Shown in pieces: positions 4,025 to 59,580 of a stretch of DNA of 64,000 nucleotides (position 1 is its first letter; every line of letters starts with the position of its first letter). Location of the stretch: IMG/VR virus record IMGVR_UViG_3300026484_000007, positions 124,001 through 188,000 of that record; one strand, 5' to 3'. The notes beneath the pieces are model-generated. The model was not told the DNA's origin. It made no database searches and saw only the letters and a list, made by a program, of their open reading frames with translations. A program made the position numbers and the translations under genes.

Positions 4025-4046
4025 TTAATCTCCTTTTTAATCTCTT

Positions 4047-4421
4047 TTAAAGATTTCTTGCAAGAATATAATGAACTCCTGTCGATAAATGTTTACATAA
4101 TTTCATCTTTTTGCAATCTGGGTTTGTTTTGTCTGGCGGTAATAATACAAAACTTGGCTCCATTAAAAGAGCATCTTTTAAATAAAAACAATATGCTTGT
4201 CTATATCTAAAATCGTGGCAATCACAATAAACCTTAATTTTAGAATTCGGTCTAAGTTTTTCCGTATTACATTCAATTTTTGCAGTGTACATTTGTGGCG
4301 CCGGTTTTGTCGTCGCCATAGTACTAATACAACTTAATTGATAACGATAAGGTTCAATATGTGTTTTAACGATTTTGATTGTTGGATCGCTTGGTTTGTT
4401 TACTCTTGATAAATCAATCAT
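4047..4421 (-). CDS. SWIM zinc-finger protein
   Basis: VYCDCHDFRYR...LCKHL (CxC...CxH). Confidence 0.8.
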   Translation of the reverse strand: MIDLSRVNKPSDPTIKIVKTHIEPYRYQLSCISTMATTKPAPQMYTAKIECNTEKLRPNSKIKVYCDCHDFRYRQAYCFYLKDALLMEPSFVLLPPDKTNPDCKKMKLCKHLSTGVHYILARNL

Positions 4422-5927: not shown

Positions 5928-7127
5928 TTATTTTAATTCATTTAGATAAATTTCTTTTCCTATTTTTATTTTATCTAATTTTTTGCGAGGATAATCTTCA
6001 TACATAGCTGAGCTAATTAAATTATCCCAACCATCTCCTTGACCTTGAATATTATATAGATAAAAATATTTACTTTTATCTATCAATTGTAAATTTTCTT
6101 TTACTTTCTTGATTATATCATTCATGTTTTTTATATAACGATCATCTAAATCAAACACAGTCTTTAATGATTTTAAGTATTTAGGTTTTTTTAATATTAA
6201 TTTTACGAAGTTAATTATTTCGATATCAGTAGCTTTATACATATAACTTAAATTTTTATATAAATATTTTTTAATAATAGAATATTCTTTATCAAAATAT
6301 TTATCCATTTTAGATTCATTAAAATATTTTTTAATTAATCTTGGGACATTTTCCATATCACGATCAACTTCGTCTGAAATCTTTTCTATTATTTTTATGT
6401 ATTTATATTTTCTTTTAATCATTTCATTTTCAAAGATTATAAAATTAAAATACATAGCAATTTTTAATTCTAGATGATCGTTGATGAATATTTTTGCTTC
6501 GTCAATGAAATCAAAATATGATTCGATTGTATCAACAATTTCTTTTAGATTTTCTTTTATGATTTTTTTTGATAAATTTTCATTTTTTTCATTTTTGAAT
6601 AAATCATTTAAATCATTAATATCATCATATATCATATAACATAGAGTCCCGATTTGAGAAAGATATTTATTATTAAATAAATAAAATTGCACCAATTCTG
6701 GCTTAGATTTGATTTTTGAAATAACTTCAAGCGTCGTGATTATATCTTCCATCATAGCTTCGTAATCGAAAACATCTAAAATTAATTTATTTTTAAATTT
6801 TTTTCTATTTTGAATCTTTTTTAAATTATTGATATCTTTACCCGCTACTTTAAAATATTTGGCAACTTCTTTTTTTGATATAAATACTCTACCATTCTTA
6901 ATTTTAAAATTATTTATATCTGGCTCGTAATTGAATTTTTCTTTTAATTCTATTAAACTATTATTTAAATTTTCTTCCGAAAATGGAATTTGATATTCAA
7001 AATCATCGAACATGTCTTCATATTTTTGAAGATATTCTTCCTCCGATAATTTTTTGATGTCTTCATTAAATCCTACTATAAAACTACTTGAACTACTATT
7101 GCTTACAAATCCTGTTCTAATTTTCAT
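5928..7127 (-). CDS. phage protein of the MKIRxGFVSNSSSSSF family
   Basis: Characteristic N-terminal motif; function unknown. Confidence 0.7.
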   Translation of the reverse strand: MKIRTGFVSNSSSSSFIVGFNEDIKKLSEEEYLQKYEDMFDDFEYQIPFSEENLNNSLIELKEKFNYEPDINNFKIKNGRVFISKKEVAKYFKVAGKDINNLKKIQNRKKFKNKLILDVFDYEAMMEDIITTLEVISKIKSKPELVQFYLFNNKYLSQIGTLCYMIYDDINDLNDLFKNEKNENLSKKIIKENLKEIVDTIESYFDFIDEAKIFINDHLELKIAMYFNFIIFENEMIKRKYKYIKIIEKISDEVDRDMENVPRLIKKYFNESKMDKYFDKEYSIIKKYLYKNLSYMYKATDIEIINFVKLILKKPKYLKSLKTVFDLDDRYIKNMNDIIKKVKENLQLIDKSKYFYLYNIQGQGDGWDNLISSAMYEDYPRKKLDKIKIGKEIYLNELK

Positions 7128-7149
7128 TTTTTTCTCCTTTCTGTGTTTT

Positions 7150-7536
7150 TTATAATTTTATTAATTTATCTATTACTAAATTATAAAATCTTTCAAAAAT
7201 ATGATCGATTTTATTTTTTGCATTTAATACTAACTCACTTTCAAGTGATTTCAATAAGCATATGAAAAAAGATAAAAATACAATAATTATATTTAAAATA
7301 GGTATAAAAATTGCTATCGATTGTACGTATAAAAAATTATCCGGAAAATAATATTTATGATTTCCTTTTAATTCTTTATACACTCTTTTCTTTAAATCTT
7401 CTTCGCTTTCATTCGGATATAGTTTTTTAAATTTTTTATACGCATCATTCATAAAAACGCGTAGACTACAATACAATGTTAATAAACCTAAAATTACGAA
7501 TACTATATATTGTGCAATAAAAGACATTAAACTCAT
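7150..7536 (-). CDS. membrane protein (IFxPxxN family)
   Basis: Two TM segments; resembles 8305-8709 and 23607-23912. Confidence 0.7.
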   Translation of the reverse strand: MSLMSFIAQYIVFVILGLLTLYCSLRVFMNDAYKKFKKLYPNESEEDLKKRVYKELKGNHKYYFPDNFLYVQSIAIFIPILNIIIVFLSFFICLLKSLESELVLNAKNKIDHIFERFYNLVIDKLIKL

Positions 7537-7551
7537 TTTTCCTCCTCTTTT

Positions 7552-7851
7552 TTATTTTTTAATTATTTTTCTTACTTCATTTAATGAAGATAATGTTTGG
7601 TCAACGATATGCTTATTATGATCTGGAATTGCTATCATTCCAGTTGCCGTAATAAAACCTTGCGCAGTTGCTAATAAATGTTCGATCTTTTCTAGATCTT
7701 TTTCAGAGATGATGTATTTATCTTTAAAAAAATCATCTACCGCATTTAAACATGTTTCTCTTTGAGCCACTTGAATATTTTCTCCAGTAACTCCTTCCAT
7801 TGAAAAACATTGATCTTCGATCAATGTTTTTAGCGATTCTTTATAATTCAT
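7552..7851 (-). CDS. hypothetical protein
   Basis: 99-aa ORF with SD. Confidence 0.65.
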   Translation of the reverse strand: MNYKESLKTLIEDQCFSMEGVTGENIQVAQRETCLNAVDDFFKDKYIISEKDLEKIEHLLATAQGFITATGMIAIPDHNKHIVDQTLSSLNEVRKIIKK

Positions 7852-7852
7852 T

Positions 7853-8023
7853 TTACTCTCCTTTTAATTCTTTTAATTCTTTCTGTAATTTCATTTTATT
7901 CAATCTCCTTAAAGCTCGTTTTGCTTTTTGGATACGAATTCTACGTTTTTTTCTTGCTTTATTATTTTTCCATTTATATAGTAAATCATCGTTTACTATT
8001 TCTAACTTTATTTCAGGTAACAT
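7853..8023 (-). CDS. small basic protein (56 aa)
   Basis: Manual translation MLPEIKLEIVNDDLLYKWKNNKARKKRRIRIQK...; has an SD and fills the gap. Confidence 0.6.
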   Translation of the reverse strand: MLPEIKLEIVNDDLLYKWKNNKARKKRRIRIQKAKRALRRLNKMKLQKELKELKGE

Positions 8024-8045
8024 AAACACTCCTTAATTAAATTAA

Positions 8046-8312
8046 TTAAATTCTTTTGATTTCTATGTCCTTACTTTTATTTAAAATTTGCATGATGTTA
8101 TTGTAATTGTCTCTATGTTGTTTTTCATTTAAACCCGCAATAAATATTTTATACGTAATATAACCTATTGTAATTTCTACGCTATCTGGAAGTATTGAGC
8201 GCGAATGCTTTTTCGATTCTTTAACAACAATTTCTTTCACTTGATTTTCATTGATAGTATCTACAATTTCTTCTAATCTATTTAATCTTTCTAAGCTAAA
8301 TTCTCTAGTCAT
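8046..8312 (-). CDS. hypothetical protein
   Basis: 88-aa ORF with SD. Confidence 0.65.
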   Translation of the reverse strand: MTREFSLERLNRLEEIVDTINENQVKEIVVKESKKHSRSILPDSVEITIGYITYKIFIAGLNEKQHRDNYNNIMQILNKSKDIEIKRI

Positions 8313-8709
8313 TTTTTTCTCCTTTTAAATTCAATTGTTTTTTAAGTAAAAAATCGATTATCTTAAGATAATATTTTACGATTTTATTTTTAATATAATC
8401 CCAAATATGTAATTTTTCAAACAGACCAATTATGCAATTTATAAATAAAATTATGAATAATAAAATATTTACGATAGGCATAAATATTGACAATACTCCT
8501 ATAAACGGATCTTCATTATCATTAGTAATTTTTATTTTAATTTTATTTTTCAATTCATTATAAATCTCTTTATTGGTCTTATTACTATAATTTCTTTTTA
8601 TCCAAGTAATTTCTTCTTTAATATATTTATACATTTCGCAGAGCATCATAATTCCGCTTAAAAAAACCGGAATTACATATACGATAATTAATGTATTAAT
8701 TAGCTCCAT
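8305..8709 (-). CDS. membrane protein (IFxPxxN family)
   Basis: Two TM segments. Confidence 0.7.
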   Translation of the reverse strand: MELINTLIIVYVIPVFLSGIMMLCEMYKYIKEEITWIKRNYSNKTNKEIYNELKNKIKIKITNDNEDPFIGVLSIFMPIVNILLFIILFINCIIGLFEKLHIWDYIKNKIVKYYLKIIDFLLKKQLNLKGEKND

Positions 8710-9743
8710 TACATTTCCTTTTCATTTAAAATTAAATGATAGCTATTCGGGGTTTCAATCCCTGCCTTTTTTTCTGCTAACTCTCTTTCTTTACAAGCCT
8801 CGCATTCCAAACATGGAACTGCAACTCCTTCTTTAATACTTGGATTATAACAAGTCCAAGTTTCATTTATAGGAACTTGTAATTCAAGAGCTCTTTTAAC
8901 TACTTCGTCTTTAGTATTATTTTTAAATGGAGCAAATAATCTAACTTTTTTAACATCATTCAATGATAATAATTCATTTAGTCTATACGCAAATTCTGGA
9001 GTAATATCCCAGTAATCTCTATGCTCTCCATAAGCTTCTTCTGAATGTTTATGGATTCCAAGACCAATTTTGACCTCATCGTATCCATTATTCAAAGCTA
9101 TAATTTCTCCAATCACTGTAGAAATAACTGAGAATAATAGATTTCTACTTGGAGTATAAAATTGGTGATTTGCTTGATCTTCGATAGATCCAGAATCTCT
9201 CATCTGAGCCCAGATATCTAAGAATTCATCAAATAAAGGTTTAAGATTCAATTTCTTAACCCCAATAATTTTACCATTAGAAATATATTTCTTCTGATAA
9301 ATATTTACTAAATTATCAAAAGCTTGCATTTCTACAAAATTCTTTTGATTGTAATTAAAATTAATTACAAAAACATCATAGCCTTGATAAAGAGCTTCGG
9401 CGCAAAGAGTTGCTGAATCTAATCCTCCACTCATTGAAATAATAGCTAATTTTCCCTTTCCCGGTAAATATTTACCAAGATATTTATCAAGCAAATCATT
9501 AAAATCTTTTGAAGCCATTTTATTTAATCTTTCTCTCCATTTATTATTCATTTTTTCATTAAGAAATTTTACCATTTCTCTTTTTGGATTTTTTCTATTT
9601 TTAACAGATGGTGCTCTTAATTTACTCCCAATATCTATCATAGTTTTCTTATGACAATTTGGGCATTCGATGATATAATCATCAAAAGGTGAGTGTTTTT
9701 TACTGAACCCACAATTAATACAAAGATACTTATTGTTTTTCAT
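8709..9743 (-). CDS. queC: 7-cyano-7-deazaguanine synthase with N-terminal Zn-ribbon extension
   Basis: SMSGGLDS, YTPSRNLLF, TWTCY, CLECEACKER; start moved to the SD-preceded ATG at 9743. Confidence 0.9.
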   Translation of the reverse strand: MKNNKYLCINCGFSKKHSPFDDYIIECPNCHKKTMIDIGSKLRAPSVKNRKNPKREMVKFLNEKMNNKWRERLNKMASKDFNDLLDKYLGKYLPGKGKLAIISMSGGLDSATLCAEALYQGYDVFVINFNYNQKNFVEMQAFDNLVNIYQKKYISNGKIIGVKKLNLKPLFDEFLDIWAQMRDSGSIEDQANHQFYTPSRNLLFSVISTVIGEIIALNNGYDEVKIGLGIHKHSEEAYGEHRDYWDITPEFAYRLNELLSLNDVKKVRLFAPFKNNTKDEVVKRALELQVPINETWTCYNPSIKEGVAVPCLECEACKERELAEKKAGIETPNSYHLILNEKEM

Positions 9744-9981
9744 TCTTTCCTCCTTTAATGTATTCAATAATATTTTTTTCGTATTTTTTAACTACATAAA
9801 CTACGCCAATTATTACAGCAAATAACCAAGAACCTACAATACTTAAAAAAAGCATTAATATAAATTCTTCTCTGATATCAGCTGCCGATTTATACTCAAT
9901 AATCTCACTTGATCTCATGAACTCAATACTTATATACAACGCTGCAATTGAACCAATAATCCATAATATAAAAAATAACAT
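9730..9981 (-). CDS. small membrane protein
   Basis: Two TM segments. Confidence 0.65.
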   Translation of the reverse strand: MLFFILWIIGSIAALYISIEFMRSSEIIEYKSAADIREEFILMLFLSIVGSWLFAVIIGVVYVVKKYEKNIIEYIKGGKNEKQ

Positions 9982-9983
9982 TT

Positions 9984-10325
9984 TTAATCCTTTAAATTTT
10001 CATATCTATCTATAATACCATAAATTACGCCTCTGTTGCAATTATATTTCTTAGCTAAAGCTGTAATTGTATAATAAGGAAGTTCTTTTAATATTTTTAA
10101 TTCTTCTTCTTTAGAAAATAATCTTTTTTTGCATTTCTGACAATATCTATTACCTTGATGTAAAAGATTATTTGATGAACAGTAAGTAATACTTTCACAT
10201 CTTTCACAAAAACATTTCCAAATAGAAGTTTTATTTTTTGGAGGTTTTTTTATTTCCTCCGGATTTGCTTTTTCAATTACGCGCAAGCTCCCGAATTTTT
10301 TACCTGTAAGATCTATTAATTTCAT
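9984..10325 (-). CDS. Zn-binding DNA-binding protein (HNH/AP2-associated N-domain plus HTH)
   Basis: DLTGKKFGSLRVI...WKCFCERC...CQKC and a C-terminal HTH; no nuclease motif seen. Confidence 0.6.
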   Translation of the reverse strand: MKLIDLTGKKFGSLRVIEKANPEEIKKPPKNKTSIWKCFCERCESITYCSSNNLLHQGNRYCQKCKKRLFSKEEELKILKELPYYTITALAKKYNCNRGVIYGIIDRYENLKD

Positions 10326-10345
10326 CCATTCTCCTTTTTTAATTT

Positions 10346-10846
10346 TTATAACAATTCAATTTCTTTTAATTTTTCAACCGTTTTATTTATGGCTTTTCCT
10401 AATAAATTTTGACCTTTCCAATTTTTTGGATTTTCGATCTTTTTGGATTTCCAATGAATGCCTACGCCCCATATTCTATCATATGGAGAACCTTCTACAA
10501 AAATACAATCTTGGTATTTTTTAAGTATTTCCAACAATTCTGGATTTTGCTTAAATTTATGAAAGTTTCCTGTCGTTACAATTTCAAATTTATTTTCATC
10601 CCAGATTTTTTGATCAAAATTTTTAACCTTTCTCCCAAGAGATTTTGCTTCTTTTGGATTATTTGAGTTTAGAATTTTTTCAGCCATTTCTTCATCTTCA
10701 AATAATTTTGCTTTCATAAACATCATATAATGCTCTGCTGAATAAAATTGTTTTCCGTATACTTCAAAACCATATAAACTCCACTGAGAAAATACTCCTC
10801 CCCAAAATGCTAAATATTTTTTTTCATTATTTATAAAAACTCTCAT
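10346..10846 (-). CDS. NADAR (YbiA-like) family protein
   Basis: FSQW, SAEHYMM, LGRKVKNFD, EGSPYDRIWGVG, GQNLLG. Confidence 0.92.
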   Translation of the reverse strand: MRVFINNEKKYLAFWGGVFSQWSLYGFEVYGKQFYSAEHYMMFMKAKLFEDEEMAEKILNSNNPKEAKSLGRKVKNFDQKIWDENKFEIVTTGNFHKFKQNPELLEILKKYQDCIFVEGSPYDRIWGVGIHWKSKKIENPKNWKGQNLLGKAINKTVEKLKEIELL

Positions 10847-10930
10847 TATATCTCCTTAATTTTTACAAAGATCTTTTTTAGATACGATCTAAAATAGAAC
10901 ACTAATAAAGTGTTCTTTTTTTAAATAACA

Positions 10931-12343
10931 TTAAATTTTTTTTCTAATATCTTCAAGAGAATATTCTTTTTGAATTTTACCATTTAAAAATACAGTTTCC
11001 ATCGCTGGAATTAAATTTTTATCATCAATACCTGGAATTGGATTTTGAAGACAAATTAATTTACCATTTTTATCTTTATAAACTTCAAGATAACCTTTTA
11101 ATGATTTTTTTCCAGAATCCGTAATTGGATCTTTAAAAACATCATGTCCTTTAATCTCGTTATTTTCTAAAGTTTCGATGTAACTGCATTTGCAAGCAAA
11201 ACTATAAGTATCTCTTGTTAATCCTGTTTGACCAATGTAAGTTCCTGATCCGAATACAAAAGTCTCAGCCGCTATTAATGGTAAATCTTTATATCCTTTT
11301 ACTGTAAAAGTTTCAAGAATATTTTTAATAGTATCTTTATTGATTCCATCTCCCCAAAGAATACCATATTTTGATGAAAAATATTTACTATTTGAAAATT
11401 GATCAAATACTCCATTAACAAGCATGATTTTTAGCATTTTCCCAAGAACTTCAATTGGATCCCCACTGTCTGGTCTAATTACTAATTTTTGATTAGGTCT
11501 TTCACTTAGAAGTTTTCTAATTTTACCAGATGGATTAGTAACCATATCTGTAAATTTAAACACATCATAACTATCGGCTACAAAGCTCATAATTGGTGCG
11601 TTTGGGTTTTCAAGAAGCATTCTATAAACAAATTCTTCTTCTCCATCGATCGAAGCGTTCGCTGTCGTGGTTGAATGTTCAGTAGCAAATACACTATATG
11701 AGCTAATTTTTTCATGGTAATAATCTCTACAAAATTTTAAACTGTGAAAATTATCAGTACCAAGAAAAATAGTATTATGCGCAAATCCAGAGATTGCTGC
11801 GCTTTCCACTGATGTCATACTTCTATCTCCGAAATTATGATAAGCAAATTTTGCCCATTCTGGGTCCCCGTATTTACAAAGCATATCATATACTTCTTTT
11901 GATTTCGTAGCTACTGTCGTTGGATACCACACTTTCATTAAAAGTGTTTCTACAAATCCTACTACCCACGGTACTTTTTTATCAGTACTTTCGATTAATA
12001 CCATTGGTATTTGAGCTGGAACCGCAGTTCCTTCTGGAAGAGCTTTAATTTTTATAGGTAATTTTCCATCAAGCTCTTCTGCTATATATTTCCATCCTTC
12101 ATAAGGAAATGATATCCCATGAAGATCTGCAAATTCTTTTGCTTCTTCAATCATTTCTATAGTAATTTTTTGACTTAAATATTCTTTAAGAATATATTGA
12201 AGCCCTACAAAAATCACTTCTCCATTATTATCCTGTACTCTTCTCGCTGTAAGATAATCTTGCATAAATACCATATTTTTTGGATATTGAAATGCGTGTC
12301 CATATTTATAACTATCTCCTAACATTACTACATTTACTTTCAT
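10931..12343 (-). CDS. nadV: nicotinamide phosphoribosyltransferase
   Basis: DSYK, HNFGDR, ATEHS, DSYD, IRPDSGDP, KDPITDSGKKS. Confidence 0.93.
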   Translation of the reverse strand: MKVNVVMLGDSYKYGHAFQYPKNMVFMQDYLTARRVQDNNGEVIFVGLQYILKEYLSQKITIEMIEEAKEFADLHGISFPYEGWKYIAEELDGKLPIKIKALPEGTAVPAQIPMVLIESTDKKVPWVVGFVETLLMKVWYPTTVATKSKEVYDMLCKYGDPEWAKFAYHNFGDRSMTSVESAAISGFAHNTIFLGTDNFHSLKFCRDYYHEKISSYSVFATEHSTTTANASIDGEEEFVYRMLLENPNAPIMSFVADSYDVFKFTDMVTNPSGKIRKLLSERPNQKLVIRPDSGDPIEVLGKMLKIMLVNGVFDQFSNSKYFSSKYGILWGDGINKDTIKNILETFTVKGYKDLPLIAAETFVFGSGTYIGQTGLTRDTYSFACKCSYIETLENNEIKGHDVFKDPITDSGKKSLKGYLEVYKDKNGKLICLQNPIPGIDDKNLIPAMETVFLNGKIQKEYSLEDIRKKI

Positions 12344-12382
12344 TTTTTCTCCTTTGATTGTATTTTGATTGTTTTTATAATA

Positions 12383-13477
12383 TTATAATATATTTGAAAA
12401 TTCTAAAATGATCTCTCTATGATCATCAAAAAATTTTATATAACTTCCGTCAAATGTTCTGTTTTCAATATCTTTAATTCTAATAAATTCAATTGATTCG
12501 GCATCATCAGATGCTTTAGCCACGTTCTTAATTTTTTTAATTATTTGAGAATTATTGATTTTAACTCCATGAACTATCGATAATCTTCTTCCATAAAGAC
12601 TTCTTTTTGGATGATCAAAAACCATTTTTTTATTTATTTTATCAATATATTCAGAGTATTCTGATAAATCAATTCCTGTTTCTTCTTTTAATTCTCTCAG
12701 CGCTCCAGTTAATGAATTCTCGTTATTATTTAAAAATCCTCCTGGTAATGCATGTGCATCTTTTCCTGGATTATATTTTCTTTTAATACAAAGAACTTCA
12801 TCTTGCAAAAATAATACAAAATCCACAGTTACGAAATTTAAAGTTTCCGGATAAGGATAACAAGAAAATTTTAATTTTTCCTGTTCAAGATATTCTTCTT
12901 CGGATTTTAAAAATCCTTGAAGTTCGTCGTATCTATCCATAATAACATTCATAGTGCTTTCTGGTATAAATTTAACCATATGCTCTTCGAAAACTTCTTT
13001 TCTTAAATAACTCAATTTTTCTCTGATATCTATACTCGAAAGATTATCATGTTTATTATCAACATGTGACATATTAAATGATGGAAATAAATTTAAATAA
13101 TATGAACTTTCATCTTTATTATGTCCATATAGATAAATATTTTCATCAGATATATCATTATTAAAAGAATACGAATAAATCTCGTCGCAAATCGTTTCGC
13201 GAACATTTTCAGCCCATTTATTATCATTGCACAAATAATCAGGAATTGATATTATCTTTATTTTCTCTTGAATTTTTTCATCAAAAGAATTAATGATCAT
13301 TTCTCTGATTTCAGTGAATTTAAATGGATTTTTATAACTTAAATGTCTATCACCACTTCCTACTAAAATTAATATGTAATCCATATTATCTTCTATCATT
13401 TCATTTATGATCTCTTTATGAGCATTATGGAATGGTTGAAATCTTCCAATCAATACTCCTAATTTTTCTTTTTTCAT
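12383..13477 (-). CDS. nadM: bifunctional NMN adenylyltransferase / Nudix hydrolase
   Basis: GRFQPFHNAH and Nudix box GG...ALRELKEETG. Confidence 0.92.
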   Translation of the reverse strand: MKKEKLGVLIGRFQPFHNAHKEIINEMIEDNMDYILILVGSGDRHLSYKNPFKFTEIREMIINSFDEKIQEKIKIISIPDYLCNDNKWAENVRETICDEIYSYSFNNDISDENIYLYGHNKDESSYYLNLFPSFNMSHVDNKHDNLSSIDIREKLSYLRKEVFEEHMVKFIPESTMNVIMDRYDELQGFLKSEEEYLEQEKLKFSCYPYPETLNFVTVDFVLFLQDEVLCIKRKYNPGKDAHALPGGFLNNNENSLTGALRELKEETGIDLSEYSEYIDKINKKMVFDHPKRSLYGRRLSIVHGVKINNSQIIKKIKNVAKASDDAESIEFIRIKDIENRTFDGSYIKFFDDHREIILEFSNIL

Positions 13478-15493: not shown

Positions 15494-15766
15494 TTATTTA
15501 ACTAACTTTTTATTTTTTTCAAAATCCTCTTTAGATTCTTTAATACACGACATAGTAGGACTTGTGCTTGTGTTTGATCTTAAAAACACAACGCAATGCA
15601 TCCTTGGATATCCTTGAGTATCAAATTCGTATACTCTTGGATTTCTACCACTTGTATCTACTGTATACCCAATACTTGGGATTTCTTTTTTAAATAAACT
15701 ACTTACCCAATTCCAATCAGCCATTACAGCAGTCGCTGCTAATCCAATTAATAGTAATTTTTTCAT
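15494..15766 (-). CDS. secreted hypothetical protein
   Basis: Signal peptide MKKLLLIGLAATAVMA. Confidence 0.7.
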   Translation of the reverse strand: MKKLLLIGLAATAVMADWNWVSSLFKKEIPSIGYTVDTSGRNPRVYEFDTQGYPRMHCVVFLRSNTSTSPTMSCIKESKEDFEKNKKLVK

Positions 15767-15789
15767 TTTTTCTCCTTTTATATTTTATT

Positions 15790-16233
15790 TTATATTTTAT
15801 CGATTTCTTTGATTACTGCTGAATACACGTTACTAGTTTTAAAAACAGAATCTTTATTCCAGTATTCGATAATACCAGAATCTTTATTTGCATAAATTGT
15901 GCAATCATTACCACAACTTTTTCTAATTTCTTCAACTTTTTTATCAAAGTAATCATTCCATAAATTATTTAATTTTTCTTCAGCTTCTTCTTTAGAATCA
16001 AATAAAATAATTTTATCTACTACTTCATTTAAACTACCACCTACTACCATCGCATCCCATAAAAAAACAACTGCATATTTCATATTTTCTCCTTTATTTT
16101 TTAATTTATTTTTTTCATCTCTTTCGAAATTATCGTATATTTTATCAACGATATCCATCACTGCGCCAACTTGCTCTTCTGATTTAAAATTAAATTTCGC
16201 ATAAAATAACATTTTTGCTTCTTCTCTTGTCAT
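15790..16233 (-). CDS. hypothetical protein (second SD-preceded ATG at 16083)
   Basis: ORF with two SD-preceded starts. Confidence 0.6.
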   Translation of the reverse strand: MTREEAKMLFYAKFNFKSEEQVGAVMDIVDKIYDNFERDEKNKLKNKGENMKYAVVFLWDAMVVGGSLNEVVDKIILFDSKEEAEEKLNNLWNDYFDKKVEEIRKSCGNDCTIYANKDSGIIEYWNKDSVFKTSNVYSAVIKEIDKI

Positions 16234-16243
16234 TTTAATCTCC

Positions 16244-16444
16244 TTAAAAATTATCTATATAAAAGCTTTTAAAAACTCCAATGAATTGATATCCGAGTCT
16301 TTCTTTTAATTCTTTTATAAAATTTAAAGCAGATTCTTTTGTTTCAAATTCCATTGTCATAAAATCTTTCATTGGGTCATCTGACCCATAAGCAAAACTT
16401 GTTTCAATATATAATACTGACCAGCACTCATCTAAATGTTTCAT
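16244..16444 (-). CDS. hypothetical protein
   Basis: 66-aa ORF with SD. Confidence 0.6.
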   Translation of the reverse strand: MKHLDECWSVLYIETSFAYGSDDPMKDFMTMEFETKESALNFIKELKERLGYQFIGVFKSFYIDNF

Positions 16445-16644
16445 TTTTTCTCCTTTACTTTTTAATTTAATAATTTTAAAAACGGCGCGAATACTGTTAT
16501 AATTATAAGAATTATAAATGTCTTTTTCGCTTGTCTTTTATTAATCTTTTCGATGCTCATTAAAACAATCGTCAGAAAAAATATAATTTCTAAAATTATA
16601 ATTAAGAATTGATAATAATCCATTATTTTCCCCTTCTTTCCTCT

Positions 16645-16872
16645 TTAGATTACATAAGCATCTACTATTTCTATAATTTCATCTTCATCAACGTCTTCAA
16701 TATCTTGATAAGGCATTTCCGTAAAATAATTAGAGTTTACTTTAGCCAATTTTGTCTTCTTTTGATATTCTTTTTCTAATTCATAATACCCGCAAAATTC
16801 ATCATGATGTTTTACAATTACAAGATCTTCTGGTAATTCTTGTAAAACTTTTATTAATTCTTTTATCGTCAT
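16645..16872 (-). CDS. hypothetical phage protein
   Basis: MTIKELIKVLQELPEDL N-terminus, common in phage small proteins. Confidence 0.7.
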   Translation of the reverse strand: MTIKELIKVLQELPEDLVIVKHHDEFCGYYELEKEYQKKTKLAKVNSNYFTEMPYQDIEDVDEDEIIEIVDAYVI

Positions 16873-24804: not shown

Positions 24805-25941
24805 TTAAATTTTATAATAACTACACCCTTCGCCACATGCATGACACATCTTAGTTCTGGCCGCAAAATCAATTGATCTTGGAGAGAACCATACTTTTTT
24901 CAAGAAATCAATTTCATCATTGATATCTTCAAAAATATTCCACGGCCTCCCATCTTTTTCATCCCAAGCTTCTTTTTCCATAAAAGAACATGGATAGATT
25001 AAACCTCTTTCATTTATATAAATACTTTGCTGAAAACTTTCGCAAGGTTCAGACATATCTATATACAACTTAAGATCTTCATCTGATAATTTTTCTTGTT
25101 TATTTAAATTCTTTAAAGAATTAATAAATTTTATTGCGCTGCAACTATCGAATCCAAAAGGGATCTGTTGATTAAAACATTTTTCAATAACCTCTTGAAA
25201 TTCTTGCTGAGAACAACCATTGTAGTGCACGCCTCTTCCTTTTTGCTTTAAAGAAAGAAAAACGACTGCGTTTAACTTTTTCAATCTTGGATCATTCTTA
25301 ATATCATTTATTAAATCATCTATTAATGGATACGTTTCTTTCGAAAGCATAAAATGAATATTAACTTGATCTAATCCAGCTTCAGTTAAATATTTTACCG
25401 AATTTAAACATAAATCTTTTCCAGCATGTGGGTAATAACTTACAGCTACTGCTCCACAAATTTTAGCTAATTTTTTTGCAGTTTCTTTATTAATATCTGC
25501 AACTGTAATATTTGGAATGACGCCTTGTTCTCTTGTATATTCCATAATTTTAAAAATATCTGGATTCAAAGAAAGATCTGCATCAGCTCCAAATGCTATT
25601 TGAGTTAAAGTTTTTGGAAGTTTTTCAAATAACTCTTTGTATTCTTCAAATGACATATAATGACCTTTCGGTGTATTTGATTTATAGCAAAAATTGCATA
25701 ATTTTCCTCCTGGTCCTTTACACATGTTAAGTACTTCGATATCAGCTATTACTGGTCCAGGTGCTCTACCTGGATCCTGTTCTTGAGTTTCACCCCATTG
25801 AGCCATAAATCCAGTTTTTTTATTAAAATGATAATTATAGTTTTTGGATCTAAGAACTTTCTCTTTTCCATTTTCTATAATTTTAAACATTCCATAATCT
25901 AAAATTCCAAATGTTTCAAAAGCGTCCATTTTCGTTTTCAT
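24805..25941 (-). CDS. radical SAM protein with SPASM/twitch-like C-terminus
   Basis: CKGPGGKLCNFCY, CES...IYPCSF, CHAC..GC. Confidence 0.85.
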   Translation of the reverse strand: MKTKMDAFETFGILDYGMFKIIENGKEKVLRSKNYNYHFNKKTGFMAQWGETQEQDPGRAPGPVIADIEVLNMCKGPGGKLCNFCYKSNTPKGHYMSFEEYKELFEKLPKTLTQIAFGADADLSLNPDIFKIMEYTREQGVIPNITVADINKETAKKLAKICGAVAVSYYPHAGKDLCLNSVKYLTEAGLDQVNIHFMLSKETYPLIDDLINDIKNDPRLKKLNAVVFLSLKQKGRGVHYNGCSQQEFQEVIEKCFNQQIPFGFDSCSAIKFINSLKNLNKQEKLSDEDLKLYIDMSEPCESFQQSIYINERGLIYPCSFMEKEAWDEKDGRPWNIFEDINDEIDFLKKVWFSPRSIDFAARTKMCHACGEGCSYYKI

Positions 25942-34062: not shown

Positions 34063-34884
34063 TTAATCTAGATTTCTATCGATATGAATTCTCGGACTAT
34101 ATCTTACTCCAATTTCTAAAGCTTTTCTAGATGTATTATTTTTAGATGTTTCCCAGAATTCTTTGTCTTTCCCGAGAGGATCTTCTGGAGTAAAAGGCAT
34201 TAAGAATATATGAGCAGCTTTAATTCCATTTAATCTTAAATAATCAATAAAATTTATAACTAACTTATTCATAGTTTCATTTACGCCCCAAATGAATTTG
34301 TAATTTATATATTCATCATCTAAATAATTAATTGTATTATCTAAAACGCGAGAATACATATTTATTACTTCCTTTTGCGTTAATTGATTTTCATAGCAAG
34401 TTTCCGCATCCATTTTTGGCGAAATGGTAATAGTAGGTTTAACGCCTAAAACATTTTTAATTTTATTCATCTCTCTAATTAAATCAAGTGTTAAATTTTT
34501 ATCTTGTAAAAGATTTCCATTAGTCTCAAAACCTACATATTTTAAATTTAAATTCGGTATGCTTTTTACTTCTTGAACTATTTCATTAAAATAATCTACA
34601 TAATGTAAAGGTTCTCCACCAGTAATTGTCAATCTTTGAATTTCTCTATTTCCAATTTCTTCATTGATTGTTTTTAAAAATTTGGGATTGAAAAGATCTT
34701 CATTGTTCTTAGCTTCATACCAACTGAATTTTGTATCACAGAATTTACAAGCAGCGCTAAAACACCCAGATAATCTTAAATAAAGACTTGGTTCCCCAAT
34801 ATTTTCTCCTTCACCTTCTAACGATATAAACCATTGGCTTATTTTTGGAAATTCATTAATTTTATTGAAATTTAATTTTTTCAC
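34063..34884 (-). CDS. queE: 7-carboxy-7-deazaguanine synthase
   Basis: SLEGEG, RLSGC...CKFCDT, ITGGEP, FETNG, ISPK, SPRIH; GTG start with SD. Confidence 0.92.
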   Translation of the reverse strand: MKKLNFNKINEFPKISQWFISLEGEGENIGEPSLYLRLSGCFSAACKFCDTKFSWYEAKNNEDLFNPKFLKTINEEIGNREIQRLTITGGEPLHYVDYFNEIVQEVKSIPNLNLKYVGFETNGNLLQDKNLTLDLIREMNKIKNVLGVKPTITISPKMDAETCYENQLTQKEVINMYSRVLDNTINYLDDEYINYKFIWGVNETMNKLVINFIDYLRLNGIKAAHIFLMPFTPEDPLGKDKEFWETSKNNTSRKALEIGVRYSPRIHIDRNLD

Positions 34885-34937
34885 TTTTTCTCCTTTAAAT
34901 TTTTTAAGCAAATAAAAAAAATTGAAAAATCAGAGAG

Positions 34938-40808: not shown

Positions 40809-41720
40809 TTATAATACATAACCCTTTACATTCTCGAATTCATATAATTTATCTTTCGGAAATACTACGTTTGGTGGAAATTCCACATCTTCTAAAAGAT
40901 AAGCTCCACCTCCAGCAATAATTACTTTTTCCGATGTCCCAAGAATTTTCTTTTCTGAAACAAGAATACTATTGAATAATTTTTGAATAAAATTATTTTT
41001 TAATTCAGTGATCATTTCTGGAATTCCTTCGACTTCTCTTCCACCGAAAACATATTTTTTCTTTAATAAAATTTTAATTGCTTCTTGTTCAGTAAATTTA
41101 TCTTTAAATTTTGCTTCTAGCCAATTAGTAAAAGGTCTTATGATACTTACGACTCCGTGAGTAGGAAACGATTTACATTTAGCTCTAATTGGCATATTAT
41201 CTTGGAAAGCTAAAAAGTTGATAGTATTGAATCCAATATCGATCACTGCCGCACTTTCAGGAGTTGTTCCAGTATCATGAATATAACTATAATATACTCC
41301 AGCGCCTTGAGGAATTATATTAATATTATTGATGTTTAACGTAATTCCATTTACAGTGATTGTTTTTAATTTTTCAACGAATCTTTCTTTTTCGCTCCAG
41401 TCGGCTAAAGCTAAACCAGTTCTTAAATCAATATCCTCGATCAATTTTCCATCTTTAATTAAATTTAATTTATTTAAAACATGAAATAAAATCAGTGGAC
41501 CGAATTCTTCTAAAAATTCATATTTAGTTGTTGTAAAACTTTCATCGATTGCTACGTCTCCAACTCTATATTTTTTACCGTTGTATTCGTAAATTTCGTC
41601 TTCGCCATAATTAATTCCAGTATCAATAGCGAAAGAGATCGCTGTGGGTAATTTGAATAATTTTCCATTCGCAGATAATTTTGTACTACTATACCCTATA
41701 TCTAAACCTAATCTATACAT
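40809..41720 (-). CDS. actin-like ATPase, ParM/StbA family
   Basis: GLDIGYSSTK, IPQGAG, VIDIGFNT, IIAGGGA, FENVKGY. Confidence 0.88.
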   Translation of the reverse strand: MYRLGLDIGYSSTKLSANGKLFKLPTAISFAIDTGINYGEDEIYEYNGKKYRVGDVAIDESFTTTKYEFLEEFGPLILFHVLNKLNLIKDGKLIEDIDLRTGLALADWSEKERFVEKLKTITVNGITLNINNINIIPQGAGVYYSYIHDTGTTPESAAVIDIGFNTINFLAFQDNMPIRAKCKSFPTHGVVSIIRPFTNWLEAKFKDKFTEQEAIKILLKKKYVFGGREVEGIPEMITELKNNFIQKLFNSILVSEKKILGTSEKVIIAGGGAYLLEDVEFPPNVVFPKDKLYEFENVKGYVL

Positions 41721-48561: not shown

Positions 48562-48681
48562 TCTTTCCTCCTTAAATTTTTTTTGCTTAATTGATATCAA
48601 TGATATAAAACGAAGTTTTAAAATAATTTACATGTACTTAAATATACTTAAATACTTAAAATTGCTCACAAAGGATATAAT

Positions 48682-49317
48682 ATGTTTTTTATAAATGAAA
48701 TGACGGAGAAAAAAATAAATAATATCGCTAATATTATTATCGAATTAAATACTCTTTTAGAAGAAGCGGCAGGGAAATACTCAATGCCTTTAACTGGAGT
48801 TCCAAAAGCAGGAAAAAGTTTAATATCAGGTGGTTTAGATCATGTTTATAAAAAAAGCAAAGATAAATATTTTATAGAGAAATTATCGCCGGATATGGAA
48901 GGAAAATGGACTTTTGATACCGGAAAGTTAGAATTAGCTAGAGAAATGAAAAATAAATTAAAAGACAAAAATGAGTTTTTTGATGATAGATTCGTAAAAA
49001 TAAAAAATACTCATATTCCTAATTTAATTAAAAATTTTGATAAAACTGTGTTTGATTTGGGAGGTATTCCTTCGAAAGAAAACGAGAGTTTTATCGATAA
49101 TATACAAAAAAGTTCAATTTTAAATGATAAAAAATTCGTACCAGTCGTTCTTTCTCCTGATAGACAGAAATCGTACGAATGGCAAAAGTTTTTCAATGAA
49201 AAATTCGAAACCGATCCTATAATTTATACTCCAAATTGGAATTTTAAAAAAGATATAAAACAACAATCGATATATCATGCTAATGAACTTCTTAACCGAA
49301 TCCAAAAAAGATTATAA
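48682..49317 (+). CDS. P-loop ATPase of the Csx3-associated (AAA-type) family
   Basis: GVPKAGKS Walker A, SPDMEGKW (cf. CPDGEGxW, from recall), VFDLGG Walker B; convergent with csx3. Confidence 0.7.
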   Translation: MFFINEMTEKKINNIANIIIELNTLLEEAAGKYSMPLTGVPKAGKSLISGGLDHVYKKSKDKYFIEKLSPDMEGKWTFDTGKLELAREMKNKLKDKNEFFDDRFVKIKNTHIPNLIKNFDKTVFDLGGIPSKENESFIDNIQKSSILNDKKFVPVVLSPDRQKSYEWQKFFNEKFETDPIIYTPNWNFKKDIKQQSIYHANELLNRIQKRL

Positions 49318-49338
49318 ATAAAAAAACATAATCCCTGC

Positions 49339-49635
49339 TTACACAGGGATTATATCTCCGACTTTTACGTCGGGTGTGTGGCTTTCAGCCACAATTCCCC
49401 CGCTTAGGCGAGGGTCGTAGCACGCCACGAATGGCGTGCAATGGTACTCATGTACCATCGCGGCAAAGAGCCATATCGGCCCTCTACCGCTTAAAATTAT
49501 ACCTACCCCAGGTTCAACCTGAGGCAATCTTTTAATTGCCTCAGGTAACTCCGCAGGGGTAATAACCCCACTTGTGAGCTCAAAGCTCACAAGTGCAATT
49601 TTATCGCTTACTTCTTTTACATCATATTTTATCAT
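49339..49635 (-). CDS. csx3: CRISPR ring nuclease Csx3/Crn3
   Basis: GVITPAEL, GIILSGRGPIWLFA..H.YH, YDPRL.GGIV..SH. Confidence 0.9.
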   Translation of the reverse strand: MIKYDVKEVSDKIALVSFELTSGVITPAELPEAIKRLPQVEPGVGIILSGRGPIWLFAAMVHEYHCTPFVACYDPRLSGGIVAESHTPDVKVGDIIPV

Positions 49636-49701
49636 CGTCTTTCTCCTTTTGATTTTTTTGCTATTAGATTATCAATGATATACAAATCAGTTCTAAAAAA
49701 A

Positions 49702-53547: not shown

Positions 53548-54147
53548 TTATTTTACCAAAACCCAATCTTCAGCTAAAATATCTGCTTGACTTGCTAACC
53601 ATCCTGGTTGTATTGTTCCAAGAGCTGTTCTCATAGCAATTACTTCATCAACTTTAACATGTCCGGAATCTCTATAATCATTCTCATCCCTTTTTATAAT
53701 ATCTGGAAAATATCTTTTTAATTCAAATTGACATTGGCAAGAATGTAACATCTTTTTTGTAATTAAGCGTAGATACATACCTTTACCGTTCCATCCAATT
53801 CTTGCAACTTTATATCCCGCTTTTAATAAAGTAATTGCGTCTCCAAATGAAAATCTAGTTTCTGGATCTTCTAAATTTACATAATTCTTATCAAAGAATT
53901 CTTTATTAATAAACCAACAATCTGGATTTTGCAATTGCTCATTAACTCCGTCCCAAACTTCATCAATACTATTAATATCTCCAGCGATAACTCCAACAAC
54001 TTCATCTGATTTAAAATCGACTGTATTCATATCATGTTCACTGATACTGATAAAACTATAATTACCATTTAATGCTTCTAAATCTTTTCCAGTGACTTCT
54101 AGTACTTCGCTAATTTTATTTCCTCTTAATGTTAAAATTCTTTTCAT
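53548..54147 (-). CDS. DUF2829/Tad2-domain protein with an extra N-terminal domain
   Basis: FGDAI.LLKAG.KVAR.GWNGKGM...WLASQADILAEDW. Confidence 0.85.
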   Translation of the reverse strand: MKRILTLRGNKISEVLEVTGKDLEALNGNYSFISISEHDMNTVDFKSDEVVGVIAGDINSIDEVWDGVNEQLQNPDCWFINKEFFDKNYVNLEDPETRFSFGDAITLLKAGYKVARIGWNGKGMYLRLITKKMLHSCQCQFELKRYFPDIIKRDENDYRDSGHVKVDEVIAMRTALGTIQPGWLASQADILAEDWVLVK

Positions 54148-55188: not shown

Positions 55189-55980
55189 TCATTTTAACAC
55201 CTGCTTTCTAATTTCTGGATCTTCAAAAGCTCCACCATAGTATTCAGTGGTAAAACCATCGCCTTGACTCATACTTCCTCTTAAGAAAGTACATGAATGT
55301 TTAATATTAATTAATTTTACGTAAACTGAATCAGTTTCAGCAACTTTACTTAATTCTTCATATAAAGCTTTAGTAAGATCTTCTTGCAACCATCCTCTTT
55401 GAGCAACATATCTAACTACTCTTTGTAATTTGCTAATTCCTAATACAAATTTCTCTGGAATATAAGAAATTATTACTTTACTATCATCTTTGAATAATGT
55501 AGAAAATGGTGCTGCATGATGACTACAAACTGCAGTTAAATCAACTTCACTTGTAATAGGTAAATTCTTTTCAGATTCATTCGGGAATCTCGCTAATCTT
55601 ACAGGAACATGAAATCTTCCACCCATTAATTCTCTATCATCATGAGTATTATCTGCGCACCACATTTTTACAATTCTCGCAGGAGTTCCTATATTTCCAA
55701 CTTCACATTCTTCCCAAACATTTGGATCATTCATATCAATTTTCATCGCATCAAATGTCTTTGTAAGATAATAAGAACTTACTAATCTTAAAATATAATG
55801 AAGTTGATCATTGTAATCTTCTTTAACATTAAATACATTTCCATTAATTTTGAATTCCGGAATCTCTTTATATTCATTCCATAATTCATTGAATTTTTTA
55901 TTAGAAGTCTCAGGGTATCTTTTTAAAAATCTTTCTTTAGTGTATTCTTTGACTTCTTTTTCTGTAACTTGAAAATTCAT
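55189..55980 (-). CDS. folE: GTP cyclohydrolase I
   Basis: TPARIVKMW, CSHHAAPF, GISKLQR, LQEDLT, HSCTFLRG. Confidence 0.92.
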   Translation of the reverse strand: MNFQVTEKEVKEYTKERFLKRYPETSNKKFNELWNEYKEIPEFKINGNVFNVKEDYNDQLHYILRLVSSYYLTKTFDAMKIDMNDPNVWEECEVGNIGTPARIVKMWCADNTHDDRELMGGRFHVPVRLARFPNESEKNLPITSEVDLTAVCSHHAAPFSTLFKDDSKVIISYIPEKFVLGISKLQRVVRYVAQRGWLQEDLTKALYEELSKVAETDSVYVKLINIKHSCTFLRGSMSQGDGFTTEYYGGAFEDPEIRKQVLK

Positions 55981-58262: not shown

Positions 58263-58859
58263 TTATTTTATCTGTAAATCTATTTTTGGATTTTTAAATA
58301 TCTTCTCCCCAGTTTCTATAGCTTTTAATAACTTATCCCACATTTCAGGATCTTTCCATTCTGATTTAATTTGATCGCTAAATATAATGTCTTTTAAATC
58401 AAAATCTATCAAGTTCAGATCTTTCTTTTTGGCTTCTGCCCAACCAGTTGCTGTTTCGTGAACTCTAACTTTATGAACTTTAACTTTTCCTTCTCCATTA
58501 TTCATTTTTGTATGTTTAAGAATTTCTTGAATAATTTTAAATAAAAGAATAGATTGTGCTTCGGCGCTTGAACTCATTGGTAAAATAATATGTCTATCCG
58601 AATAGTTCTTAGCTACATTCACTAACTCTTCATCTTTATCCCATACAGTAATGGCGTGATCAAAACTATCAATGATGTCTTTAATAGTCCCTTTCATTAA
58701 TCCAAAATCATAAATCATCATTCCATTGTCTAATTTATTTCCTTTTAATACCACTTCAACAATATAACTATGACCGTGAATACTATGTGAACAGCGTTCG
58801 CTTGTGCAATTTCTCACAATATGTGCATTTTCGTATTTAAATAATTTTCTAATTTTCAT
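58263..58859 (-). CDS. queD: 6-carboxytetrahydropterin synthase
   Basis: AHIVRNC..RC..SIHGHSY, DFG, FDH, SAE, HETATG. Confidence 0.92.
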   Translation of the reverse strand: MKIRKLFKYENAHIVRNCTSERCSHSIHGHSYIVEVVLKGNKLDNGMMIYDFGLMKGTIKDIIDSFDHAITVWDKDEELVNVAKNYSDRHIILPMSSSAEAQSILLFKIIQEILKHTKMNNGEGKVKVHKVRVHETATGWAEAKKKDLNLIDFDLKDIIFSDQIKSEWKDPEMWDKLLKAIETGEKIFKNPKIDLQIK

Positions 58860-58898: not shown

Positions 58899-59534
58899 TT
58901 ATTTTTTTTTATTTCTTTTATTTTCTTTTTTTAATTTTTTCAGATATTTTTTTAATTTTTTAAGACCTTTAACCGAATCGTATTCTATTCCATCGATTAT
59001 GATATGAGTAGCAATTCCTCTTTTTAACATATCTTCCGCAGTAAACCAATATTCTTTACCTTCGATTAATTTTTTCCATTCTTTTTTAGAAAAGAATCTT
59101 TTAGCGATACTTAAAAAACCTATAATATGCTTCGAATCAAAATCAATTCCATCTTTCATAGATTGATAAGAACCAGCATATCCTCCACTATAATTATGAA
59201 ACATAATTCTCGAATTCCAATAAATTACTCTTTTATCAGCTGCTACGAATGTAAAAGCTCCAGCGCTTGAAGCATGACTTTCAATGTAAGCAATAGTTCT
59301 TTTTGGAAATTTATTTTGCATAACATTAATTATTTGCTGACATTCAGTTACCAATCCACCTGAGCTCATAATTTTTAATTCTAATTCATCTTCTGGTCCA
59401 GCATTATATAAATCATTTAATATATCGTGAAAATCTGGAATTTGATTATCAAAACCATTAATGAATAATATATAATTCTTAATAATTTTTTTATTTTCTT
59501 TTACGATTAATGAATGATTCTTTGCTTTTTTCAT
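58899..59534 (-). CDS. ClpP-like serine protease
   Basis: MSSGG, ASSAG, IMFH, EYWFTAED. Confidence 0.85.
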   Translation of the reverse strand: MKKAKNHSLIVKENKKIIKNYILFINGFDNQIPDFHDILNDLYNAGPEDELELKIMSSGGLVTECQQIINVMQNKFPKRTIAYIESHASSAGAFTFVAADKRVIYWNSRIMFHNYSGGYAGSYQSMKDGIDFDSKHIIGFLSIAKRFFSKKEWKKLIEGKEYWFTAEDMLKRGIATHIIIDGIEYDSVKGLKKLKKYLKKLKKENKRNKKK

Positions 59535-59580
59535 ATTAATCCTTTTTTTAATTTTTTCGAGCAAATAAAAATTTTCTATT

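Follow-up and report, generated by a model that had tools for sequence, protein, structure and literature searches.

A phage-borne Csx3 ring nuclease and its conserved NTPase partner: a candidate two-gene module against type III CRISPR signalling

Introduction

Viral ring nucleases are an established route past type III CRISPR-Cas immunity, and the families described are AcrIII-1 (DUF1874) and, since 2025, AcrIII-2 (viral SAVED); a paper of November 2025 counts one viral ring nuclease identified before its own viral SAVED protein. A further ring nuclease, Crn3 (Csx3), is known from AF_1864 of Archaeoglobus fulgidus (AfCsx3; PDB 3WZI, 6YUD), which belongs to a type III CRISPR locus. Here we describe a csx3 gene that lies beside a gene for a P-loop NTPase in a 64,000-nucleotide stretch of DNA (hereafter the window), positions 124,001-188,000 of IMGVR_UViG_3300026484_000007, an IMG/VR contig of 272,602 bp from an uncultivated large phage. 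We consider it moderately probable that the two genes form a counter-defence module of the phage against type III CRISPR-Cas signalling, made up of the Csx3 ring nuclease and a conserved NTPase partner.

Crn3 is specific for cyclic tetra-adenylate (cA4) and dependent on Mn2+, has its active site between two stacked dimers and shows cooperative kinetics (PMC7371418, PMC8284326). In vivo it weakens Csx1 immunity, only partly relative to AcrIII-1 (PMC7371418, PMC8284326), and AfCsx3 was originally described as a Mn2+-dependent deadenylase (cited with PMC7371418). Csx3 is also found fused to an ATPase, as Csx3-AAA (cluster 35 of Shah et al. 2019, CYB_0599; Synechocystis Slr7080) and AAA-Csx3 (cluster 67, Caur_2269), and this ATPase is referred to as "of unknown function" (PMC12409355, PMC9676260).

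Results and Discussion

The Csx3 protein

The csx3 (crn3) gene, at 49339-49635 on the minus strand, encodes a predicted cA4 ring nuclease of 98 residues. An initial annotation of this DNA had called the protein a textbook Csx3/Crn3 with the motifs SGRGPIWL, YH, YDPRL and SH, and family profiles and fold agree with it. All motifs were located (SGRGPIWL, residues 49-56; HEYH, 62-65; YDPRL, 73-77; SH, 85-86). The protein matches PF09620 with E=1.5e-26 and 92.5 bits (cut-off 21), the equivalog model TIGR02579 with 91.8 bits (cut-off 55.4) and, by phmmer, A. fulgidus Csx3 with 5e-18. Its AlphaFold (AF2) model has a predicted local distance difference test score (pLDDT) of 93.2, and Foldseek matched the model to 13 AfCsx3 chains with E values of about 1e-9, template modeling (TM) scores of 0.80-0.87 and root mean square deviations (rmsd) of 1.3-2.2 Å. 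Superposition of the model on cA4-bound AfCsx3 (6YUD) gave a TM score of 0.87 and an rmsd of 1.3 Å.

The residues of AfCsx3 that bind cA4 or take part in catalysis are S44, G45, R46, I49, H57, H60, D69, R71 and H80 (PMC7371418), and 9 of 9 are retained in the alignment with the window protein, as S49, G50, R51, I54, H62, H65, D74, R76 and H86. The first four fall in the SGRGPIWL loop (S49-L56; 49468-49491, minus strand), where the aligned positions are invariant and, by the roles given in PMC7371418, would form the cA4-binding face. The Mn2+-binding or catalytic histidines H57 and H60 have their counterparts in H62-E-Y-H65 (49441-49452, minus strand), the catalytic Asp D69 and the phosphate-binding Arg R71 in D74-P75-R76 (49408-49416, minus strand), and H80 in H86 (49378-49380, minus strand). 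On every computational test made, the protein thus appears to be a bona fide and complete Crn3, and it would be expected to cleave cA4. It resembles AF_1864 in being a stand-alone protein of about 100 residues, with about 40% identity, a TM score of 0.87 and all the key residues. It differs from AF_1864, which sits in a type III CRISPR locus, in that it is phage-borne and under a phage promoter cassette and has no cas genes nearby; its activity is a predicted one.

The phage contig and the absence of cas genes

The contig is that of a large phage and not a host CRISPR locus. The window is AT-rich (27.5% GC), and 60 of its 61 open reading frames (ORFs) of at least 120 residues lie on the minus strand, the exception being the NTPase gene at 48682-49317 (plus strand). 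Phage-type genes in the window encode multisubunit RNA polymerase (RNAP) subunits, including RNAP beta, DNA ligase and RecJ; RecD-like and DEAD/ResIII-type helicases are also encoded, and a T4 gp13-like neck protein lies just past the right edge. Searches of the window found no tRNA and no CRISPR-like array, and when the window's ORFs of 120 residues or more, 60 in all with the NTPase set aside, were scanned with PADLOC, there was no match to a core Cas family (Cas10, Cas7, Cas5, Cas6, Cas1). In the precomputed Pfam annotation of contig positions 114,725-196,281 (81.5 kb of the 272.6 kb), Csx3 is the only Cas family listed, and within this stretch csx3 does not lie next to a type III CRISPR-cas locus. 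The claim of the initial annotation that the window holds neither cas genes nor an array therefore stands, and its concern that the contig might turn out to be a host CRISPR locus is answered by the length and the phage genes of the contig. Megablast of 20 kb of the window against 50,697 GenBank phage records gave no match.

Were the region nevertheless cellular, part of a host genome or of an integrated element, Csx3 would simply be one more CRISPR-associated gene. Binning did place a related contig of 5.2 kb in a Nautiliaceae metagenome-assembled genome (MAG), but the 272.6-kb IMG/VR record, the phage-type multisubunit RNAP, ligase, RecJ and T4 gp13-like neck protein, the near single-strand coding and the lack of tRNA and cas genes in the searches above make a cellular origin extremely unlikely.

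One could also imagine that the pair serves a cA4 system of the phage itself, either a phage-borne type III CRISPR-Cas system or a cA4-activated effector directed against competitors, with Csx3 as its off-switch, the part it plays in cellular loci. Csx3 and Csx3-NTPase fusions are, after all, defined as type III accessory genes (PMC6546367), and the inspected 81.5 kb leave about 190 kb of the contig outside. One ORF of at least 120 residues in the window matches the PADLOC profile Mvol_0529-fam (4e-33), which Shah et al. 2019 (PMC6546367) have as a type III-B accessory family associated with CorA; 20 candidate ORFs tested were all negative. However, accessory genes normally lie within a few kb of the effector genes, and there is no core Cas protein among the 60 window ORFs, no Cas Pfam other than Csx3 at 114.7-196.3 kb and no array, so that we regard an own-system role as quite unlikely.

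An NTPase family linked to Csx3

The second gene of the pair, at 48682-49317 on the plus strand, encodes a P-loop NTPase of 211 residues. An AAAGGA ribosome-binding site (48670-48675, plus strand) stands 6 nt before its ATG at 48682. The Walker A motif GVPKAGKS (G39-S46; 48796-48819, plus strand) has G39, P41, G44 and K45 nearly invariant in an alignment of 92 relatives. In the same alignment, D71 of the motif SPDMEGKW (residues 69-76; 48886-48909, plus strand) is invariant and P70, E73, G74 and W76 are nearly so; this motif follows strand 2 directly, at a switch-I-like or catalytic-base position. A Walker B or G3-like motif, DLGG (residues 125-128; 49054-49065, plus strand), has a nearly invariant D125 and invariant G127 and G128, and the DTGG motif of the Der GTPase lines up with it. 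The elements for putative NTP binding and hydrolysis, K45 and S46 of Walker A and D125 of Walker B, are thus present and conserved.

The initial annotation had linked the PDxEGxW and DxGG motifs to the ATPase found fused to Csx3. This family link is correct, because profiles of such proteins match the NTPase and because many of its relatives are such fusions. Among PADLOC profiles it matches PDLC01045 "Csx3-AAA" (4.1e-12; profile positions 107-231 of 286, the ATPase part), PDLC01059 "AAA-Csx3" (3e-7) and a third profile with a Csx3 label, PDLC01515 (5.2e-14); the Csx3-AAA-type profiles derive from the accessory-gene survey of Shah et al. 2019 (PMC6546367). The profile searches against Csx3 and Csx3-AAA fusions that had been proposed as a check thus place both proteins in their families.

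When 1.84 billion representative proteins were searched with a profile of ten close homologues of the NTPase, no more than 200 relatives came up. Of the 150 best, 58 also contain a Csx3 domain, which may precede or follow the NTPase domain. Csx3 is fused or nearby in 42 of 47 metagenomic loci that encode an NTPase relative: csx3 lies directly upstream on the same strand in 26 (gap of 12-82 bp), the two form a single ORF in 12, and 4 have other layouts. Of the remaining five loci, four lie on contigs too short to reach the place where Csx3 would be expected. In a scan of GTDB genomes, made with a 21-sequence alignment as the 92-sequence alignment was too diverse, Csx3 was within 2.2 kb of the NTPase in 4 of 4 loci found. 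The linkage of the NTPase to Csx3 is near-obligate. The window NTPase shares Walker A, PDxEGxW and DxGG with Csx3-AAA and AAA-Csx3 proteins, but in the window the two parts are separate, convergent genes, neither fused nor co-directional, and they are on a phage.

The fold of the NTPase

The Csx3-fused relatives of this protein carry the label "AAA", and the initial annotation had likewise expected a partner of AAA type, which the predicted fold contradicts. Pfam and NCBIfam searches with the NTPase gave no match, AAA models included, a PHROGs search gave only weak matches to function-unknown families, and PDB sequence searches, with the protein alone or as a profile, returned chance matches to repeat proteins or alignments that for the most part went no further than the P-loop. 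With AAA+ proteins, too, the sequences align over the P-loop region only. The AlphaFold model is confident (pLDDT 93.1, predicted TM score 0.85) and shows a 170-residue core with no extra output domain. Its best PDB fold matches are SRP54/FtsY, Get3, MeaB and adenosine phosphosulfate (APS) kinase, and among viral proteins it best matches the kinases of deoxynucleoside monophosphates (dNMP), APS and phosphomevalonate, polynucleotide kinase being in the list as well (TM 0.40-0.52 throughout). The top 50 PDB fold matches include no AAA+ protein.

We rejected an AAA+ assignment because the fold matches are of the SIMIBI and kinase type, because AAA+ proteins are missing from the top 50 and because the DLGG Walker B motif has no catalytic Glu. 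The NTPase resembles SIMIBI NTPases and P-loop kinases in its best structural matches, in the conserved Asp after strand 2 and in a DxGG motif that is like the G3 of GTPases. The Asp after strand 2, which corresponds to D71, is the position of the catalytic Asp in SIMIBI proteins and P-loop kinases. The NTPase differs from both classes in having no NKxD motif, no in-register deviant Walker A lysine and no recognisable lid Arg, and the likeness comes with TM scores of only 0.40-0.52 and no Pfam or NCBIfam family match. From the model and the motifs we conclude that "AAA" is a misnomer for the Csx3-linked domain, which belongs on the kinase-GTPase side of the P-loop proteins, and a SIMIBI- or kinase-like rather than AAA+ fold probably applies to the whole Csx3-linked NTPase family.

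Residues 3-29 of the NTPase (48688-48768, plus strand) form a helix in the AF2 model (pLDDT 81-92), and an N-terminal extension is common to the four NTPases of the phage clade described below and to P0037, a 466-residue relative with two Csx3-like stretches. A speculation that the first 30 or so residues are a cleavable propeptide finds no support in a confidently modelled helix that P0037 shares. Translation might instead begin at an in-frame methionine, Met35, which the three phage homologues conserve; we judge it less likely to be the true start because of the AAAGGA 6 nt before the ATG at 48682, the confident helix and the similar extension in P0037.

Gene layout, promoter cassette and base composition

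The csx3 and NTPase genes are convergent, tail to tail, with 21 bp between their stop codons, as had been annotated; the NTPase gene is also, as claimed, the only substantial plus-strand gene (the sole plus-strand ORF among the 61 of at least 120 residues). Upstream of csx3 is a promoter and 5'-untranslated-region cassette (49636-49697, minus strand), with TATCATTGATA at 49670-49680, an A-run and an AAGGAG ribosome-binding site at 49643-49648. This cassette promoter, proposed in the initial annotation, is real. Allowing up to one mismatch, the window has 31 copies of TATCATTGATA where 5.4 would be expected, and none of 100 shuffles had as many as 31. A conserved block of about 45 nt, TATCATTGATA-N-AGCAAAAAAA-N-AAGGAG, stands directly 5' of at least eight small genes of the minus strand, namely csx3 and others that start near 42829, 43110, 43395, 47193, 47930, 48247 and 48558. 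The cassette is absent 5' of the NTPase gene, which has a different upstream region. The csx3 terminator (49322-49359, minus strand) is a hairpin with a 17-pair stem and a T-run, with TTATTTATAA after a TTTTT run. The terminator extends over the stop codon of csx3 and takes up the space as far as the NTPase stop. Read on the plus strand, the hairpin has no T-run after it, so the NTPase transcript may run antisense into csx3.

The csx3 gene has 47.1% GC (43% at third codon positions, GC3) and the NTPase gene 26.7% (GC3 20%), the latter like the large core genes. The initial annotation had argued from strand, upstream motif and GC that the two genes are regulated separately. Strand and upstream motif do differ, but the GC contrast does not hold as a sign of recent separate capture. 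The same contrast is found in a 5.2-kb contig of 29% GC (L017, the same contig as L023), the one binned with the Nautiliaceae MAG: its Csx3 gene (3957-4256) has 48% GC and its NTPase gene (1160-1771) 28%. This contig is of kindred phage origin, with an NTPase 65% identical to that of the window and a syntenic helicase fragment; its Csx3 is 54% identical. That the contrast recurs despite 54% identity argues against recent separate horizontal capture as the cause of the high GC of csx3, and the high-csx3, low-NTPase contrast appears, from these sequences, to be maintained and not a trace of recent transfer.

On the related contig the order is NTPase (plus strand), two minus-strand genes and Csx3 (minus strand), so that the pair is again convergent, with 2.2 kb between. 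The convergent layout is therefore conserved in this phage lineage and is unusual for the family. These observations bear on whether the two genes are simply unrelated neighbours, a resident phage NTPase beside a csx3 cassette acquired separately. The opposite strands, the different upstream sequences and the GC of 26.7% against 47.1% would fit such an accident, but members of the NTPase family have Csx3 fused to them or alongside in 42 of 47 metagenomic loci, 58 of 150 representatives are fusions, and the related phage keeps both genes and the GC contrast with a Csx3 of 54% identity. We therefore find chance neighbourhood very improbable.

On the minus strand at 42.4-43.5 kb and 46.9-50.7 kb, the 45-nt cassette precedes each of at least eight small genes of no known function; those of 46.9-50.7 kb have 39-48% GC against 26-27% for core genes. 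Several of the cassette-driven proteins are Ala/Lys/Glu-rich and coiled-coil-like, and a Pfam search of these genes gave no convincing match. The stretch at 46.9-50.7 kb looks like an accessory or anti-defence gene island.

Relatives of the pair

In a FastTree phylogeny, the window NTPase falls in a four-member phage clade (support 100), nested in a mostly stand-alone group of 37 rows (support 96): 30 of them are solo and 4 are fused, while the other 3 are longer proteins in which no Csx3 domain was detected. As the root is arbitrary and the method a quick one, we take from the tree only that the nearest relatives are split and not fused. The neighbours of the split csx3-NTPase pairs are mostly ORFans; the few with Pfam matches are of the type found on mobile genetic elements (PcfJ, Cro/C1 helix-turn-helix, HIRAN, PIF1 and a phiEco32-like ligase), and no Cas family is among these matches. 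The initial annotation had the phage capturing both parts of a host off-switch. This is not borne out, the nearest relatives being split operons on virus- or mobile-element-like contigs and not host fusions.

Four longer contexts with Pfam annotation have no cas gene within 10 kb on either side. L068, a 60-kb contig, has an integrase and an M15 peptidase as neighbours; L070 (96 kb) has DNA methyltransferase genes, an SNF2 helicase and a TnpB-like gene; L072 (85 kb) carries a Csx3-NTPase fusion, a second, solo Csx3 and a DEAD helicase; and L073 (65 kb) has an NTPase-Csx3 fusion, a 1027-residue Laminin_G_3 protein, bpMoxR and a topoisomerase. Among the window and the related loci, only L037 has a CRISPR array.

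Some virus-like contigs carry more than one Csx3. In L072 the solo Csx3 (7765-8064) is about 2 kb upstream of the Csx3-NTPase fusion (10001-10897). L074 (460-2561) has the NTPase, a 215-residue gene and then two tandem Csx3 genes. The phage-like L070, which has a csx3-NTPase operon, also encodes an intein-containing N6/N4 DNA methyltransferase and a TnpB/Cas12f-like protein (5930-7933, 15536-16645).

Csx3 in viruses

A narrow pattern scan of IMG/VR found nine Csx3 loci, and in three of these, the window, L009 and L014, the NTPase adjoins Csx3. At four of the loci where Csx3 is alone the neighbours are phage genes (primase, UvsX and ribonucleotide reductase; an endolysin; a portal protein; a jumbo-phage RNAP beta), and no Cas neighbour was seen at the Csx3-alone loci. 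The viral scans are biased towards close relatives, and the counts are lower bounds; at least ten virus-like uncultivated contigs carry Csx3. By contrast, tblastn of Csx3 and the NTPase against the 50,697 GenBank phage records gave no match. A survey of phage genomes for the pair, as had been suggested, thus gave it in IMG/VR and not in GenBank. A published survey of 28,114 phage genomes has AcrIII-1 in 36, Csx20 in 4 and Csx16 in 2, with no Crn3 listed (PMC12409355), and our literature search found no published report of a viral Csx3. The occurrence of Csx3 on viruses is a new point, as is the apparent recurrence of the Csx3-NTPase pair, judged from sequence, on virus-like contigs without cas genes.

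One of the Csx3 loci is from a second large phage (L016, IMGVR_UViG_3300026488_000013, 167 kb), whose 10-kb locus has 31% GC and which encodes an RNAP beta subunit of the jumbo type. Its sample number neighbours that of the window; its solo Csx3 is 41% identical, with no NTPase within 5 kb.

A possible mechanism

Like AcrIII-1 and AcrIII-2, the window Csx3 is virus-encoded and predicted to destroy cA4 and so to blunt type III signalling. It is unlike them in its Csx3 fold, which has been likened to STAS in the literature and is unrelated to DUF1874 or SAVED, and in the metal dependence, inter-dimer active site and cooperative kinetics expected of a Crn3; AcrIII-1 and AcrIII-2 also have no NTPase partner. 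Type III CRISPR protects against nucleus-forming jumbo phages (10.1101/2022.06.20.496707), and the remark in the initial annotation that this type works against jumbo phages that shield their DNA is thus documented.

In the mechanism that we propose, Csx3 would be expressed from the cassette promoter in common with a set of small accessory genes. Its dimers would stack head to tail around cA4, as in A. fulgidus Crn3, and with Mn2+ would convert cA4 to linear di-adenylates. This would remove the messenger made by host Cas10 on sensing phage RNA, and with cA4 removed the cA4-dependent effectors would stay off. The NTPase would be the conserved functional partner of Csx3. Judged by fold and motifs, it would more likely be a nucleotide-dependent switch or dimeriser like those of the SIMIBI/GTPase class, and might then promote or gate the joining of two dimers that Crn3 needs for catalysis; the main alternative is a kinase acting on the 5'-OH cleavage products. 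That the pair is a dedicated, virus-recurrent two-component anti-type III module, in which the NTPase uses ATP or GTP to assemble or gate Csx3, or else phosphorylates the 5'-OH products, is a possibility that we put forward tentatively.

A different division of labour would make the NTPase an effector and Csx3 its cA4 sensor, or would give Csx3 a substrate other than cA4, for instance the 3' tails of RNA or a different cyclic oligonucleotide. Csx3 has been suggested to regulate the ATPase allosterically (Shah et al. 2019, PMC6546367), AfCsx3 was first taken for a Mn2+-dependent deadenylase, and a near-obligate linkage of the two domains would suit a sensor and its effector. Every residue needed for cA4 cleavage is retained, however, and in vitro Crn3 acts fast and specifically on cA4 (PMC7371418); it is not evident what a lytic phage would gain from an effector of the host type, and the 170-residue NTPase core carries no extra output domain. 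We hold these arrangements to be unlikely, although less so than the other explanations considered above.

Several observations weigh against an anti-CRISPR module of two partners. At six of the nine Csx3 loci from IMG/VR no NTPase was detected within 5 kb, and hence Csx3 can occur in viruses without the partner. Opposite strands and different upstream sequences mean that co-expression of csx3 and the NTPase gene is not evident. A switch and a kinase are not separable from fold matches as weak as those of the NTPase (TM 0.40-0.52), a phage-borne CRISPR system is possible in the roughly 190 kb of the contig beyond the inspected 81.5 kb, and the sole hint of a host is the binning of the related contig with a Nautiliaceae MAG. 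We nevertheless favour the counter-defence module. The identity, fold and residues of Csx3, the family of the NTPase and its near-obligate linkage to Csx3, and the phage context are observed; cA4 cleavage by this Csx3, the use of the pair as an anti-CRISPR and any role of the NTPase are inferred.

Other counter-defence-type genes in the window

The window holds several further genes, on the minus strand, that are of a counter-defence type. An Apyc1-like protein of the metallo-beta-lactamase fold (280 residues, 5063-5905) has the JGI Pfam assignments PF23023 Anti-Pycsar_Apyc1 and Lactamase_B and is a candidate cyclic-mononucleotide phosphodiesterase (anti-Pycsar). A NADAR protein (166 residues, 10346-10846) is encoded in a row with NAMPT (470 residues) and a bifunctional NMNAT/Nudix protein (364 residues; 10931-13477 for the two), a set that resembles phage NAD+ salvage pathways countering NAD-depleting defences. 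About 4 kb from csx3 is a gene for a Tad2-like protein (199 residues, 53548-54147; Pfam PF11195) of the Thoeris anti-defence sponge family. Genes for QueC-like, GTP cyclohydrolase I, PTPS and radical-SAM proteins (8709-9767, 55189-55980, 58263-58859, 24805-25941, 34063-34911) suggest 7-deazaguanine DNA modification, and one radical-SAM protein of the window is weakly viperin-like. ClpP (58899-59564) and a ParM/ALP-like actin (40809-41720) are also encoded, and another ORF of at least 120 residues matches PDC-M42C (3e-40). With so many genes directed against immune signals or NAD+ depletion, the phage would be a natural home for a ring nuclease. Moreover, the Apyc1-like, Tad2-like, NADAR and NAD-salvage genes in the same 64 kb make this phage lineage a rich source of counter-defence genes.

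Implications

A viral Csx3 with an NTPase is a plausible two-gene counter-defence, and one so far unreported. Csx3 would add a third fold to the viral ring nuclease class, and its presence in uncultivated viruses, with none in the surveyed phage collections, shows that isolate collections miss viral Csx3. If the NTPase drives Csx3 assembly, it would give a ring nuclease that is cooperative and limited by concentration the speed that a virus needs; if it phosphorylates the 5'-OH products, the signal could not be reused. Either role would also explain the "AAA" domain of the cellular Csx3-AAA proteins of CRISPR loci, and the compact, split phage version, which comes with a scorable phenotype (rescue from type III interference), would be a direct route to the role of the NTPase.

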